A stretch of 63,972 nt of DNA, filler included, from Ministeria vibrans ATCC 50519 (taxonomy: Eukaryota > Protista > Filasterea): assembly GCA_943704425.1 (NCBI GenBank). It is 9 parts of 9 records of this genome, joined end to end, with 100 filler letters (N's around TTAATTAATTAA, not from the genome) between each part and the next. Parts side by side here need not be neighbours in the genome. Positions count along the whole stretch, not along the records: positions 34,498 to 43,547 come from CALSCP010000269.1; 8 more parts are not named here. The stretch is one strand, 5' to 3'. Position numbers and translations under genes: made by a program. Below, in pieces: positions 36,591 to 43,547 of this stretch. Position 1 is the stretch's first letter, and every line of letters starts with the position of its first letter. The notes under the pieces were generated by a model, which was given only the letters and a program-made list of their open reading frames with translations, did not search any database and was not told where the DNA came from.

Positions 36591-36948
36591 CTTTTTGTAT
36601 TTATAAAGAAATGCTGCATGCCAGAGGATGCATGTTGTTTTTGACGTGCCTCTACGCCTCCAGCATTCGAAGCGTGTTGATACTTAGGGGACGGTTCCCC
36701 GGAAATAAGAGGTGCTCTACACTAACGAGCAAGGTGCGTTACACAGTACGAAAAATAAGGCCAGAGACTCACGGATGTCACGGCAGAGACGCTAGAGCAA
36801 CATAACTTACATAAGTACATATTGACTACCATTCGTCATTCGAGAACGCCAAGGATACATATAATACTTGAGATTAAAAATTTAAATTAATCGTCATTCT
36901 TATATATTTTATAATAATAATAATAATAAAATATAATAAATATTTTAC

Positions 36949-37569
36949 ATGATCGTTGTGTTTGACTTGGGGGGCGTGCTCGCCAGCAACAATGACTACT
37001 CTGCGTTCTTGGAGCGTGTTGACCCCGAACGACGCACGGCAGCGCTGGCTGCAATCGATGAGGAGTGGAATAGAGTGAAGGTTTCGCCAACAGCGACGCC
37101 TGAGAGCTTCTGGCGCGCCATCATGACGAGTGCGCAGGTTGACGGGGACTGGAACGTCTATAATGATGCTTTGTGCGACGGCTCAAGCGCATATCCCGAC
37201 ACAGTCGCTCTGGCACAACGTCTTGTCGCCGCTGGACACTCTGTCGGCATTTTGTCGAACCACGCAACGCACTGGTTTGCTCATCTGTACGCGAAACACA
37301 ATCTAGGGAGGGTGTTCGACGCATTCAGCAAGCAGGTTGTCGTCAGTGCGGCTGTTTGCGCTGCAAAGCCCCATGCGGAGTGCTTTGAGGCGTTTCTGGC
37401 GACGACGAACGGAGCAAGGGCGGCGCAGTGTGTGTTTATTGACGACAAGAAGCGCAATGTTGATGCGGCGTGTGCATTCGGCATGAAAGGCATACTGTTC
37501 AATGCGGAGAAGGATGCCATTGACGTGCTGGAAAGAGCACTGGCTGAAGCTGGCGTGGTGCTGGCGTGA
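36949..37569 (+). CDS. HAD-superfamily phosphatase (YihX / soluble epoxide hydrolase N-domain type), intronless
   Basis: Motif I VVFDLGGVL, motif II ILSN, motif III KP, motif IV FIDDKKRNV. Confidence 0.9.
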   Translation: MIVVFDLGGVLASNNDYSAFLERVDPERRTAALAAIDEEWNRVKVSPTATPESFWRAIMTSAQVDGDWNVYNDALCDGSSAYPDTVALAQRLVAAGHSVGILSNHATHWFAHLYAKHNLGRVFDAFSKQVVVSAAVCAAKPHAECFEAFLATTNGARAAQCVFIDDKKRNVDAACAFGMKGILFNAEKDAIDVLERALAEAGVVLA

Positions 37570-37839
37570 ACAGTACAATGCGTTTGTACATATTATAACA
37601 CGAACAACAGCAATTTTTAGTAACCCTAACCCTAAGAACACGCCCAACCGGTAACCACCATTTTTGCCCGTGGCCCCGTGTAAACTAAAAACTTCCGGTC
37701 CCAAAAGACCCAAATCTTCCCAGAATGCGCTGAAACCCACTTTAGCAAGGAGCCTTTAAAAGTGTTTATCCATTAATTCCATTAATCCATTATCAAACTA
37801 ATCAAAAATTCAAAAATCAAAGCAAAATAATTATAAGAA

Positions 37840-39584
37840 ATGAAGCTCCTTGTGTTGCTCACCGTTGCCGTGGCCTACGCCGCCGCTGCCGACCCGACTT
37901 GGCATGTAAAGTCTTTTTTTTTTTTTTTTTTGTCAAAATTTTCACACTGGCAAAATCGCTCGCTTCGATAGGTCCTGAAGGACGACCTCGCTACGATTCT
38001 CACCGGCATTGACTTCCCGTCGAACAACGATGGATTCCTGTCGGGCGGTAAGCGTCGTCGTCGACGGGGTGGGGGCGTTTTTTTTTTTTCGTAACGACGT
38101 TTGTTTTTTTTTTCAACTTCGCAGGTGCCAACGGTGCCGGCTCGCTGATCCTGCACACTGTGGATGGTGGAAAGAACTTTACCTCTGGTACGATGCAAGA
38201 GACCGATATTGCATTGCGTGCGTCTTTTTCTACCGTGTTTGCCTAAAGTTTGCCTCTCAAATATTGAGAGCTCTCAGGCTCTTGCTTGCCTACGTGATGG
38301 ATGCGCTTTTCTTCGTGGTCATCGTGTACGAACCCTAACCCCTGCCTTTTCTTTATTTATCTGCGACGCAGAGAGTCACGACACCGAGATGATGTATTTG
38401 GCTCTTGCTTGCGCCGGCCCGAAAAACTGCCTCGCGACTGGTACAGACAGAAGGAAGCACGAACCCAAGCGAACTCAGCCCATATTCTTAGGACTTGGTC
38501 TTGCTGAGCGCATCCCCGGCTCGTCGTACACCAAGGACGGCGACAATTGGCTTGCTAGCGATTCGCCCCATCTCGAGAGTGCTTTCCAGGATTGCTCTGC
38601 GTTGCATGACAAGAAGACATTTTTCCGTTACGGCGACTGGGCCACCCTTCACGGCTCGTTCTCGGGCGTCAGCATCTCGCACGACGGCGGCGTCAAATTC
38701 GACGACATGCCCTGGCCCACCAACTGGACGACCGTCCGGTAAGACGCTTCGAAAGGTTGAAGACATATACTAACCTCCTCTTTATCGTGTCTTTTCGTCT
38801 CTTGCGTGTGTAGTTACGGCAGTGCCATCTCCAATGACTTCATTGTTCTGGCGGGCGGAGAGTGGCCCGAGGACCCTACACCGCCAAAGGAGGACCTGAG
38901 TGCTCCCCGTCTCATCCGGAAGCTGTCCATGCACATCCACCTTGTTGAGGACCGTGTCACCAAGAAGCGCTCCATGGTCCGCGCCCCTCCCGCCAAGAAA
39001 GTCGAGTACGTATTCCACTGACTCTTTTTTGTTTTGTTGTATTCACATTTTGTCTTTCTTAGGGGCTCTGATTTCAAGACACTCATTATGAAGAGCATCA
39101 ACGGCGGTCAGACCTTTGAGACTCTCTACAACCACACAGTACAAACACAAGAGCTCCATTCTCCAATCTTATCTGTGTGTTTTTTGTGTGATTTCAGGGC
39201 AGCTACTACCCTAACGGAATCCAGTTTGTGACGGACAAGATTGGCTGGTTCGTGTGCGAGGGCGAAGACGAGAGTGGCGCTGCTGTGGCCTACGTCATGG
39301 GCACGACCAACGGAAAGGACTTCACCAAGCAGCTCACAGTGGCCAACGGCGGGCTCTTCGGCGTTGCCTTCCACAACGACAAGGAGGGCTGGGCTTACGG
39401 CGCCACCTTTGCCAAGTTCGGCTTCACCGCCAACTTCTACCACACCACCGACGGCGGCAGCACCTGGACGCTCGAGACGCTCAAAAACCACTACCCATAC
39501 GAGATCTCTCTCTCTCCCGGCGGAAACTCGTACGCCAGTGCCTTCATGGTCGACGGCAACAGCGGTGTCCTCATCTACGACTGA
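37840..39584 (+). CDS. Secreted BNR/Asp-box beta-propeller protein (Ycf48/VPS10-like), multi-exon
   Basis: Signal peptide MKLLVLLTVAVAYAAAA. Asp-box repeats TVDGGKNF, TKDGDNW, SHDGGVKF, SINGGQTF, TTNGKDF, TTDGGSTW. Confidence 0.8.
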
Positions 39585-40359
39585 TTGCTTACAACCAGAG
39601 TAGCAAGAATGAATAAAAACTCCATAAAAACCTAGCCCCAGGAAAAGAAATAGAGGAAGCGATTATTCCATGTCACAGTATGGTAAAACACAGAAAGGAA
39701 GAACGGAACACTTAGCAACGCAATTCTTCCGCCATAAATAGCCGGCGAGAAGATCTCGGGAGATGTTCATAGACCCACTCCCAATAATACCCTCGCGACA
39801 AAAGTGTACGGAGGCAGAACCCAGTACCGAGCGAGGATCAGGACCAGCCTGGGTTTGCGGTGGTTCCGTGCGTCTCAGTCACCGCCACCAGGCGAACCGT
39901 TGGCCACGGTTCCAGGCTACGGTGTCTAACGTGTACTCGTGTAGGCATGCTGAGCCAACCGATCAAATGAAGATCAAATCGGACTTTGGCTTCCGCATCT
40001 ATATAGTGTATTTGAACGAGAGGGAGATTACGGAGTACAACCACAGCCACCGCAATGATAACGTAAGCCTTGGGCCCAATGCCGCCCATCGCCGCATTCT
40101 GGAGCAGGGCGAAGGTAGTAGAGAGTGCAGGCAAGAAAAAGAATAATACAAGAGAAAAGAGTGTTTATATAAAGGCTGGAGTGCGGATTTGCCAATCAAT
40201 CTTGCGCCACACACGAAACATAGCATCGAGGACCGAGCTCTTGTCGCACAGGTCAACGATTGTCTTGGTCGCATGCTCGACGCCAATGGAGTGGATGGAT
40301 CGCCAGGGTGTGCGCAGATCGCAGTAGCGCTTGTGTCTGTGCCGAGTGCGGTGGTCTAT

Positions 40360-40688
40360 CTCGAGTGCGGTAGCTCCATCGCCACATGCAGCAGCACAAA
40401 GAACTCGATCTCTCCGCCACCGCGTCGTACAACCACTGTCTCGTGAGGGTGCGAGTCCGTGCGACTGGGTCTGCGTGAGCATGCGGTTGGTGAGCGTCGC
40501 TCGACGACACCGGTGCTCGCCGTACCGCGTAACCCTTATCGGCCGCCAGTACCTGCTGCTTGCTATCGACCGCCGTGAAGATGTCGGCAAGGCGGTTCGC
40601 GAGCCAGTGCAGGTTGAGGATCACCATCGGCTGCAATCCTTTTGCTTTTGCCTGCCGCGTGTAAAGCAGCAGCAAGCCCCAGTCATTG
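40360..40688 (-). pseudogene. Possible degenerate COR-domain (Roco) fragment
   Basis: DWGLLLLY..LQPMVILNLHWLANRLADIF resembles the COR LHxxGxxxxF..VxLxPxWL signature. No start codon context, and the frame breaks downstream. Confidence 0.35.
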
Positions 40689-40863
40689 AACAACATGGCT
40701 GCTGTGTTCAAATCGCAAGGAGACTACACTCGTGCTCTTGAGTACTACGAGCGTTCTCTGACCATCTACGAGAAGTCTCTTGGTGCCGACCACCCATCCA
40801 CAGGCCGCACGTTGAACAACATGGCCGTGGTGTTCCAGAACCAAGAAGACCTCACTCGTGCCC
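40686..40863 (+). pseudogene. Isolated TPR fragment (kinesin-light-chain / NPHP3-type 42-aa repeat)
   Basis: LNNMAAVFKSQGDYTRALEYYERSLTIYEKSLGADHPSTGRTLNNMAVVFQNQ. About 1.4 repeats, no upstream exon evident, followed by (GA)n and a gap. Confidence 0.75.
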
Positions 40864-41537
40864 AGTTTACGCTCTTTACCATGGTGAGAGAGAGAGAAAG
40901 AGAGGGAGAGAGAGAGAGAGAGAGAGACNNNNNNNNNNNNNNNNNNNNNNNNNNNNNNNNNNNNNNNNNNNNNNNNNNNNNNNNNNNNNNNNNNNNNNNN
41001 NNNNNNNNNNNNNNNNNNNNNNNNNNNNNNNNNNNNNNNNNNNNNNNNNNNNNNNNNNNNNNNNNNNNNNNNNNNNNNNNNNNNNNNNNNNNNNNNNNNN
41101 NNNNNNNNNNNNNNNNNNNNNNNNNNNNNNNNNNNNNNNNNNNNNNNNNNNNNNNNNNNNNNNNNNNNNNNNNNNNNNNNNNNNNNNNNNNNNNNNNNNN
41201 NNNNNNNNNNNNNNNNNNNNNNNNNNNNNNNNNNNNNNNNNNNNNNNNNNNNNNNNNNNNNNNNNNNNNNNNNNNNNNNNNNNNNNNNNNNNNNNNNNNN
41301 NNNNNNNNNNNNNNNNNNNNNNNNNNNNNNNNNNNNNNNNNNNNNNNNNNNNNNNNNNNNNNNNNNNNNNNNNNNNNNNNNNNNNNNNNNNNNNNNNNNN
41401 NNNNNNNNNNNNNNNNNNNNNNNNNNNNNNNNNNNNNNNNNNNNNNNNNNNNNNNNNNNNNNNNNNNNNNNNNNNNNNNNNNNNNNNNGGGGGGGGGGTT
41501 ATTTATTTTTGAAGGGTCTTCAGTGGAGAATCAATAT

Positions 41538-41975
41538 ATTACTGTCGCAACCCTCCGTCGTTTCTTGTTGTTGAGCTTCTGTTCATGATAAACATGTGAG
41601 AAACAAACTCAAGGTCCGACTTGTCACCAACATAGAGAGGGCAAATATGGGCATAGCCCCTGTCGGTCGCCTGCGGCGTCAAACCAGTGGTCGCTGGGAC
41701 AACAAGTTTGATGTGGTTGCCATTTAAAAGAACACCGCGAAAGACAAGGCGGTTCTTCTAAGTTTCGCGCCGATCAAGAGTCAGCTCCATGTTCACTGAG
41801 TCGGACTTCCAGCGCGGGGGTTTGTCCGCCATGTCAAGCGTGAATTGGTACTTGTTCCCTGAATCAAACACAGGTACGCGACTGTTTCGAAACGTCTCCT
41901 AAGAGGGTTCCAAGTCCTCTGGGAATGCCAACTCAGCCATGGGATGATGAGAGAGTCGGAATAGTTGCTCGCTCC
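41538..41975 (-). pseudogene. Possible pseudo-exon with two in-frame TAG stops
   Basis: After a ccgcag acceptor, one frame reads about 145 codons (SEQLFRLSHHPMAELAFPEDLEPS*ETF..RRET*KNRLVFRG..) with only two internal stops. Family not recognised. Confidence 0.3.
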
Positions 41976-42831
41976 TGCGGGAGGAAGTACAGCATTAGAT
42001 TACCATAAAAAACTATTGCAGATGAGAACACATAAACCATGTAGCATGATTACAACAACTCAAACTGGAAATGAATTCGAGATGTGAAGGGAAACCCCAA
42101 CTGATTTCGCAACAGACACAAGAGCAAACATTAGCCCACCTCTCACTTCTCAGAATGACAGTTATGACACCTCCTAAGTCCTTATGATCAAAGAAGGAGA
42201 GCAGAACAGAATTGAAAAGAGTTGAAACACAAAAACGTCACGGGCAGGATGCCTCGAAATAAGCGATAACGCGTTGACAGAAAAAGCGCACGGTCGAACG
42301 GGACCGTAGCTATTGGAGCATGAGGTACTAACGCCCATACACCCTCCCGCCGGCAGAGAGCGCGAAAGGATTGTGCGAACTTTGCTCAACCCGATGTCGC
42401 GACAAAAGAAAAGCCTTTTTCTGCTGTTATCTGCGAAAACGCCACGAAAACATGTTTTTCATGCAGACACGGCGCGAAATGTGTCCGGTTCAGTGTAAAT
42501 ACCTCGTTTCTACTTTGGGGCGCTCGGTGGGAAATTGAAAATATTGTGAAGTTTTAGTCAGAATAAGGCCGTGCGCTAAATACGCTAATCGATTTTGGAT
42601 GATGACTTTTCTCTAAGTGCTATGTATCAGTAGGGTTGGGTGCCTAGTGTACGTGGGCGCGAGGGTTTGTGTTTCCGGTGCATACTTATTTTTGTAGTGA
42701 GTGAAGATCGCACCAAAACCTAAAGTCAATTTTCTCACTTTAGGGGGTCAAAGTGAACATTCGTTAAGAATGCAATGGACGGTATGGGTTTACTGTTTAG
42801 TGAATGGTGCATGGGGGTGAGTGAGTAAGTG

Positions 42832-42885
42832 AGGGTTAGGGTTAGGGTTAGGGTTAGGGTTAGGGTTAGGGTTAGGGTTAGGGTT
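42832..42885 (+). repeat. Telomeric repeat array AGGG(TTAGGG)8TT
   Basis: Direct reading: eight perfect TTAGGG units. Confidence 0.95.
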
Positions 42886-43547
42886 CAGTTTTATTCATTT
42901 CTTCCTTCCCCAGCAAACTCCTGTGCGTACTGCCGGGCGTTCGTTGATCAATCTGATCGACTTTTTCAAATTTGAAAAAGCAAAAAGAGGAAAAACATTT
43001 CGCGACTAAAGTCTCTCTTCTTCCCGGCCCCGGCGGGCTGGATGCCTCCCGGGAAGGCAGCTCTAACTGCGCTGGTGAAGGAGGGCCTCGGCTCTGCGGC
43101 GGGTGACGTGATATCTGTGGGAACGAGGGTCGACGTGCAGCGGTCACCCGAGAGCCCCATTGCGCCGGTTCCGGTCCGCGTGCTGGCCGACGCGCGCCCC
43201 GGAGTGGTAGTCACGGTGCGTTCGGACCGTGTGGACGCGGTGATGAACCATATCGGCCGCTGGGGGTTGACCATCGGACGATCGATTTTCAAATATGCGG
43301 ACCTCTCGATGCTGTTTGAAATCTTTCATTCCGAATCCCTGAAACGCGTTGAGGTGACCGCCGCGATCAAGGCCCAGCTGCAGGCCTTGGACGTGTGCCA
43401 CTCGACCCGTGAGCCGTCGTACGCTGAGGCACTGAGGGGCGCCGGACAGCGGCATTTTGTCTCAGTAAAGTGGAACGGCGACCAGCGCGCGCTCCACTTT
43501 CTGCCCCAGAGCGCCAACGAGCTACGTCACCACTCAGGCAACGTTCA
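42886..43547 (+). mobile_element. Candidate telomere-targeted non-LTR retrotransposon: 5' UTR plus start of ORF1 (43042 onward, cut by the linker)
   Basis: Begins right after (TTAGGG)8TT with an initiator-like TCAGTT junction, then a 156-nt leader and an intronless GC-rich ORF with a PSYAEAL motif. No RT domain visible. Confidence 0.5.

Follow-up and report, generated by a model that had tools for sequence, protein, structure and literature searches.

Retrotransposons that target telomeres are known from insects (TRAS and SART on TTAGG repeats; HeT-A and TART) and from a few fungi (MoTeR). The HeT-A, TART and TAHRE elements of Drosophila and the Athena/Terminon Penelope-like elements join the chromosome end through their 3′ ends; Drosophila has no telomerase repeats and Athena has no endonuclease. 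SART1 uses overlapping stop and start codons for the translation of ORF2. The SART1 insertion site lies between the T and the A of the TTAGG strand, and at least three repeats are needed (PMC7265360). The endonuclease of MoTeR1 is restriction-enzyme-like, and this element has variant repeats at its 5′ end, which faces the chromosome end; a second MoTeR element, MoTeR2, shares only its termini with the autonomous MoTeR1 (PMC7367193). Among APE-type LINEs, target-specific families are known from two clades, Tx1 and R1 (PMC4640811). None of these three papers describes a protist LINE of the APE type that is dedicated to TTAGGG repeats (PMC4640811, PMC7265360, PMC7367193), which is not in itself proof of novelty. 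The window, the whole stretch of 63,972 nt from the Ministeria vibrans ATCC 50519 assembly (GCA_943704425.1) that was analysed, very probably includes the 5′ end of such an element. The piece from 42832 to 43547 is best explained as a target array followed by the 5′-UTR and the first 168 ORF1 codons of an autonomous endonuclease-type LINE that resides specifically in the (TTAGGG)n repeats of a marine eukaryote, residence in telomeric repeats only being judged from seven contigs.

Positions 42832 to 42885 are occupied by a perfect AGGG(TTAGGG)8TT array (TRF: period 6, 9.0 copies, 100% matches, score 108) that is the target sequence of the element; chance alone would give 0.01 occurrences of an 11-mer of the telomere repeat in the window. 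The G strand of a telomere points, 5′ to 3′, to the chromosome end and, as it is the + strand that reads as the G strand here, the end is to be placed on the right-hand side of the array. The array is followed by CAGTTTTATTC, and the next bases past the array read CAGTTTTATTCATT. At the junction itself, the last T of the repeat and the adjoining CAGTT form the sequence TCAGTT (42885 to 42890, + strand), which resembles an initiator and may have a role in starting transcription. Array and leader are located exactly where the initial annotation had placed them, as confirmed by the sequence and by TRF, and its description of a 156-nt leader (42886 to 43041, + strand) followed by an ATG at 43042 and a frame open to the edge of the piece is also correct. 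The encoded protein contains EPSYAEAL. The leader, the 5′-UTR of the LINE, is 99 to 100% identical to the corresponding sequences in three of the related contigs described below (L001, L002 and L003). It contains a perfect 20-nt palindrome, CTTTTTCAAATTTGAAAAAG (42961 to 42980), detected as a self reverse-complement BLASTN match and present in every copy that covers these positions (the window, L001, L002 and L003), that may be a candidate protein-binding site. The 168 stop-free codons of ORF1 (43042 to 43547, + strand) are cut by the edge of the piece and, with a G+C content of 0.68, 0.46 and 0.74 at the three codon positions, look coding. Neither the Rfam nor the tRNA scan of the piece gave a match.

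An exhaustive search of 1.84 billion representative proteins with the ORF1 sequence returned a single match, P0001, that is 98% identical. The 90% cluster to which P0001 belongs has four members (P0001 to P0004), to which the window ORF1 is 98 to 99% identical, encoded on a TARA scaffold (L001), a JGI metagenome contig, contig JBFPED010040371.1 of the NCBI assembly GCA_041166445.1 (L002) and an ENA metagenome scaffold (L003). For the JGI contig, the gene layout and Pfam call were used, and sequence comparisons were made without its DNA. The cluster of the downstream ORF2 added three contigs, two from Logan assemblies (L005 and L006) and one from ENA (L007), and a DNA-pattern scan yielded one TARA contig (L004), which brings the public assemblies with copies, other than that of the window, to six (TARA, ENA, Logan, JGI and NCBI). 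A related-locus search of JGI metagenomes, and scans of viral and prokaryote genomes for the element, found none. In L002, L003, L005, L006 and L007, ORF1 is followed by an ORF2 that encodes a reverse transcriptase (RT). A long ORF with a Pfam RVT_1 call follows ORF1 in both L002 and the JGI contig, and the 1595-aa ORF that follows ORF1 in L003, although without a recorded Pfam call, aligns to the L002 ORF2, from which it differs in 17 codons over 4785 nt. With an RT-bearing ORF2 behind it in sister contigs, the window ORF is ORF1 of a retroelement rather than a host gene. The lack of any Pfam family, and of an RT within the window, would suit an ordinary host gene located beside an interstitial telomere repeat, but the presence of ORF2 in five loci and of a multicopy, tandem unit leaves that reading a negligible probability and it was rejected.

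The initial annotation had proposed that the piece is the 5′ end and ORF1 of a telomere-targeting element, and this has been borne out by the RT downstream, by the related copies and by their telomeric flanks. A single-copy host gene is excluded, as copies 98 to 99% identical are present in six other assemblies, the ORF2 located downstream has 2228 codons and a recognisable RT (RVT_1, E 3e-16), and (TTAGGG)nTT, the same repeat as in the window, directly precedes the 5′ end of the element in L001, L002, L004 and L007. ORF2 is intact in L002, L005, L006 and L007, and in L003 as far as the contig extends. Any two ORF2 copies differ at 2 to 17 codons over 4.8 to 6.7 kb, too few for selection to be estimated. 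Copies from five assemblies are intact and more than 99.9% identical, and the window copy has 99.7% DNA identity to L002. Judged by these identities, the family is either recently active or strongly homogenised.

Sister copies reveal that full-length ORF1 proteins have from 496 to more than 516 aa (about 500 aa), with 496 aa in L003. An orphan N-terminal part of ~200 aa, without a recognisable family, is followed by a basic middle stretch that contains a 20-aa (60-nt) tandem repeat of the ERKERQQGEKKECAVTTAPP type and then by an acidic tail. The copy number of this repeat differs between copies of the element, with one in L003 and in the JGI copy, two in L001 (L001:990-1110) and at least five in L007 (L007:1-360). 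ORF1 matches nothing in Pfam, NCBIfam or PDB sequence searches, the 168-aa fragment in the window has no Atlas feature neighbour and no word-index match, and single-sequence AlphaFold modelling of the N-terminal 230 aa gave no usable fold (pLDDT 32). An exact-protein look-up returned no entry for this fragment or for the protein of the HAD gene described below. A CCHC knuckle (C-x2-C-x4-H-x4-C) is absent from ORF1, there being only three cysteines in the 496-aa protein.

The ORF1 stop codon overlaps the ORF2 start codon, within ATGA, in all six loci that cover the overlap; in SART1 the ORF1 stop and ORF2 start likewise overlap. The 2228-aa ORF2 protein has a LINE-type reverse transcriptase, recognised as RVT_1 by Pfam at residues ~1030 to 1297 (E 3.3e-16, 60 bits; cut-off 29.6) and with the RT motifs GTRQG at 1177 and FVDD at 1253. 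Among PDB sequences, the best match of the RT to a protein with a solved structure is the human L1 ORF2p, at 7e-7 and a weak 30 bits, followed by R2 at 0.04. Word-index searches with the RT, both as a region of the whole ORF2 and as a 701-aa piece that admits proteins of ordinary LINE length, returned only its own cluster. N-terminal to the RT, six APE-type motifs are present in the usual order, with QD in place of QE, namely FNTKGW in the region of residue 114 (N114-like), CVQDTG at 164 (QD at 166), SVYVRHG at 310 (Y312), AGDLND at 360 (GDLN at 361), RLDRIL at 518 (D520) and DSDHA at 542 (SDH at 543). The match of this region to Pfam Exo_endo_phos (E 0.026, 14.7 bits) is below the cut-off of 24.5; in the Atlas feature comparison, all of the 10 best matches are clusters of PF03372 (Exo_endo_phos), the top score being 0.95 with 161 shared features. 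C-terminal to the RT, residues 1768 to 1954 constitute an RNase H-like part with TDAS, E, TDN, H and D motifs (Pfam RNase_H, E 0.004, below the cut-off), and there is a C-terminal CCHC finger that matches zf-RVT with an E value of 6e-5, just below the Pfam cut-off. The APE-like, RNase H-like and finger assignments, based on sub-threshold Pfam matches and motifs, must be considered weak. No meaningful PDB match was obtained by phmmer with the endonuclease and C-terminal parts, single-sequence AlphaFold modelling of the endonuclease part gave no usable fold (pLDDT 34), and neither Pfam nor NCBIfam recognised a restriction-enzyme-like endonuclease domain in ORF2.

As reconstructed from L002, L003, L004 and L007, the full unit is ~8.9 kb in length. 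It terminates with a 475-nt 3′-UTR, 75% G+T, that folds no better than its shuffled versions (z 0.4) and ends ...GTCTCG straight into GTTAGGG repeats, with no poly(A) and no run of A residues. Some site-specific LINEs also have no poly(A), so the missing tail does not exclude membership of the LINE class. An LTR element was ruled out, as no LTRs were found; the sole direct repeat of at least 25 nt in L007 is the 60-nt tandem repeat in ORF1. In L004 and L007, the 3′-UTR ending ...GTCTCG is followed by GTTAGGGTTAGGGTTAGGGTT and then by CAGTTTTATTC of the next unit, and this succession of 3′-UTR, (TTAGGG)3TT and the next CAGTTTTATTC establishes that the units are arranged head to tail. The telomere-repeat spacer between units is 21 nt and is the same in L002, L004 and L007. 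L002 corresponds to a single, circularly permuted unit, which is how a tandem array would be expected to assemble, and the gene layout of the JGI contig fits one unit with overlapping ends.

All five of the visible 5′ junctions (the window, L001, L002, L004 and L007) are located after GGGTT and in one orientation. The window, L001, L004 and L007 have the identical junction GGGTT|CAGTTTT, with L001 starting with GTTAGGGTTAGGGTT and continuing with the same CAG start. In L002, the same three repeats are followed by 42 extra nt and then by TTTTATTC. Two 3′ junctions are fully read (L004 and L007) and a third (L002) is broken by NN; all three lead into GTTAGGG. Within telomeric repeats, the element has a constant position and a single orientation, in what is a small sample of seven contigs. 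Insertion at TT|AGGG, as originally proposed, is correct for the 5′ junction but does not describe the 3′ side, where the repeat resumes as (G)GTTAGGG. This resumption is compatible with a small target deletion or with a 2-nt TT duplication, depending on where the last base of the element is placed.

Two of these contigs have additional features. The last 15 of the 42 extra nt in L002 (L002:400-441) resemble a degenerate telomere repeat and the 42 nt match nothing elsewhere in the element; they may be a variant of the 5′ junction or nucleotides added at integration. In L004, (TTAGGG)3TT is followed by a unit (L004:4484-4776) that has the first 60 nt of the 5′-UTR, 95% identical, continues as unrelated sequence and ends in a run of T residues at the end of the contig. 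On the basis of these shared 60 nt, this unit may belong to a second family or be a non-autonomous partner, comparable to MoTeR2 in its relation to MoTeR1, with the shared termini of MoTeR2 paralleled by the sharing of only the first 60 nt, or it may be a metagenome chimera.

The regularity of these arrays could also be explained by a tandem repeat of the subtelomere that arose once, from a LINE copy and captured telomere repeats, and has been multiplied and kept uniform by unequal recombination or break-induced replication, with no ongoing site-specific integration. Such an origin would account for the identical 21-nt spacer in L002, L004 and L007, and differences between ORF2 copies at just 2 to 17 sites in 4.8 to 6.7 kb are as expected under concerted evolution. 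A passive satellite would, however, decay, whereas in every copy the two ORFs remain intact across ~8.2 kb and an endonuclease-like domain has been kept. There are, furthermore, at least four junction contexts (in the window, nine repeats that adjoin unique DNA; between units, three repeats; in L002, three repeats plus 42 nt; and in L004, a different unit) and the 5′ end is always after GGGTT. We regard this explanation as improbable.

The sense strand of the element is the G strand and its 5′ end is on the centromere side. This argues strongly against endonuclease-independent addition to the 3′ end of the G strand, as by HeT-A/TART or Athena-type Penelope-like elements, which would put the 3′ end of the element towards the centromere. 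A telomeric location and head-to-tail arrays are features shared with these systems, as retroelement arrays at chromosome ends are characteristic of HeT-A/TART/TAHRE and Athena/Terminon, but the element described here has the opposite orientation, telomerase-type repeats flanking every unit and an APE-like domain in which all of the catalytic motifs are kept. Terminal addition was rejected on orientation and has only a very slight probability. MoTeR1 and MoTeR2 of Magnaporthe oryzae (CRE/SLACS-like) resemble the element in residing in (TTAGGG)n telomeres, in head-to-tail arrays with short TTAGGG tracts between units. In contrast to MoTeR, the element has an N-terminal, APE-like endonuclease, a 5′ end that faces the centromere and no run of variant repeats at that end; its proximal 5′ end, and the failure to find a restriction-enzyme-like endonuclease by Pfam or NCBIfam, set it apart from the CRE-like elements.

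The closest parallels are with SART1 and TRAS1 of Bombyx mori (R1 clade), APE-type LINEs that share with the element, whose putative endonuclease is APE-like, the two ORFs and the fixed orientation in telomeric repeats. By analogy with SART1, the sense strand is the G-rich strand, the 5′ junction follows TT and nicking would have a C-strand geometry. The orientation is that of SART1, as had been noted initially, and the at least three repeats required by SART1 can be compared with the three repeats present between units here (PMC7265360). The element differs from SART1 and TRAS1 in that its target is TTAGGG rather than TTAGG and its host a marine protist-like eukaryote, in having an ORF1 without CCHC knuckles, no poly(A) and an ORF2 approximately twice as long with an RNase H-like part, and in having no sequence similarity to them detectable by the searches run. 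Given an ORF1 without CCHC knuckles and a 3′ end without poly(A), the proposed affiliation with the R1 clade (SART/TRAS) is not supported. Similarities to the L1/Tx1 group are that the best solved-structure match of the RT is human L1 ORF2p and that the C-terminal finger matches zf-RVT, which is weak evidence that may lean to the L1/Tx1 side; the RT match is, however, weak (30 bits) and ORF1 does not have an L1-type ORF1 family.

For an autonomous LINE specific for telomeric repeats, the most plausible life cycle would begin with transcription from an internal promoter at the junction. Translation of ORF2 would then occur by termination-reinitiation at AUGA, as suggested by the ATGA overlap. 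Given a proximal 5′ end and a sense strand that is the G strand, it must be a nick in the C strand that initiates target-primed reverse transcription, and the APE-like endonuclease would presumably introduce this nick in the C-rich strand within the repeats. The freed 3′ OH would prime reverse transcription at the 3′ end of the RNA, probably helped by pairing with telomere repeats at the 3′ end of read-through RNA; as there is no poly(A), the start would be set most economically by pairing with the nicked C strand. A second-strand cut of the G strand after TT would generate the constant GGGTT|CAG 5′ junction, and arrays would build up by repeated insertion on the distal side of the last host genes. 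A fixed choice of site, or amplification of the array by recombination, could account for the constant three-repeat spacer.

Judged from the sequences compared, the element appears to be a protist counterpart of the silkworm telomere elements, without detectable sequence relatives, and the strategy appears to be SART/MoTeR-like, carried on TTAGGG by this lineage in a marine eukaryote present in several ocean metagenomes. A family that is intact and near-identical across ocean metagenomes, with an orphan ORF1 and a very divergent ORF2, is possibly an independent case of LINE telomere specificity. The more extended proposal, that this is an independent APE-type LINE lineage on the ancestral TTAGGG repeat in a widespread marine protist, with priming by telomere-repeat complementarity and arrays that are a regular part of chromosome ends, is put forward only tentatively, and we consider it rather doubtful as a whole. 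If true, there would be a Bombyx-like mixed telomere outside the animals, with element arrays interleaved with telomerase repeats, and the element would encode a naturally occurring endonuclease with specificity for telomere repeats of the human type. These observations bear on how LINEs acquire telomere specificity and on how hosts tolerate or use such LINEs, and they provide a candidate for a natural endonuclease, and for natural integration machinery, directed at telomere repeats of the vertebrate type, a goal otherwise approached in work with SART1.

The sequence to the left of the array (41489 to 42831) is unique, non-coding, telomere-adjacent DNA, with no BLASTN match to any copy of the element. 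Its last ~230 nt are G-rich and telomere-like, and degenerate G-rich motifs and the repeat family D3 are present in this flank near the array. It had been described as a gene-poor stretch of 3 kb and it is gene-poor, with no ORF of more than 71 aa, but its length was overestimated, as there is 1.34 kb of real sequence preceded by a 560-N scaffold gap (40929 to 41488), with a gene fragment just before the gap. Further left, from 35615 to 40928 and within 2 to 7 kb of the array, are host genes with introns, consistent with the array being distal to unique DNA. They include a GINS Sld5 gene (SLD5_C, E 2.5e-10), a HAD-family hydrolase gene (36949 to 37569), a gene for a secreted protein with a signal peptide (37840 to ~39600) that has several short GT-AG introns and weak, sub-threshold matches to BNR/Ycf48-like Pfam families, and the fragment of a TPR_10/TPR_12 repeat gene (40686 to 40928) that is cut by the N gap. 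With Sld5 within 2 to 7 kb of the array, an essential replication gene is very close to the chromosome end.

The element could be real and its join to this particular subtelomere nevertheless an assembly artefact, the left flank having a true terminal telomere that was fused, via the repeat common to both, with a telomere-flanked element originating elsewhere. At 54 nt, the array has a length near the k-mer sizes that assemblers commonly use and near the usual de Bruijn k values, so that the physical link between subtelomere and element rests on one short-read scaffold; this scaffold has N gaps at microsatellites and ends inside a multicopy element, and its left flank is in none of the other assemblies compared. 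The element-side, right-hand junction recurs in independent assemblies, and this speaks against an artefact only indirectly. A false join is the likeliest of the alternatives considered, although we still think it unlikely, and it would concern the position of the array beside these host genes.

Long (TC)n/(GA)n microsatellites and a 20-nt CT-rich minisatellite are located at 34499 to 34754, 35162 to 35207, 35404 to 35503 and 40886 to 40927. Such tracts adjoin both N gaps (35253 to 35403 and 40929 to 41488), which indicates an assembly scaffolded from short reads. The C-strand telomere motif AACCCTAACCC is present on the + strand in three exact copies (35915 to 35925, 37622 to 37632 and 38331 to 38341), opposite in orientation to the terminal array, with about 0.01 expected by chance. 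Two copies are in apparent introns, of the Sld5-like and BNR-like genes, and the third precedes the ATG at 37840 by 218 nt; the three copies may represent relics or a telobox-like motif.
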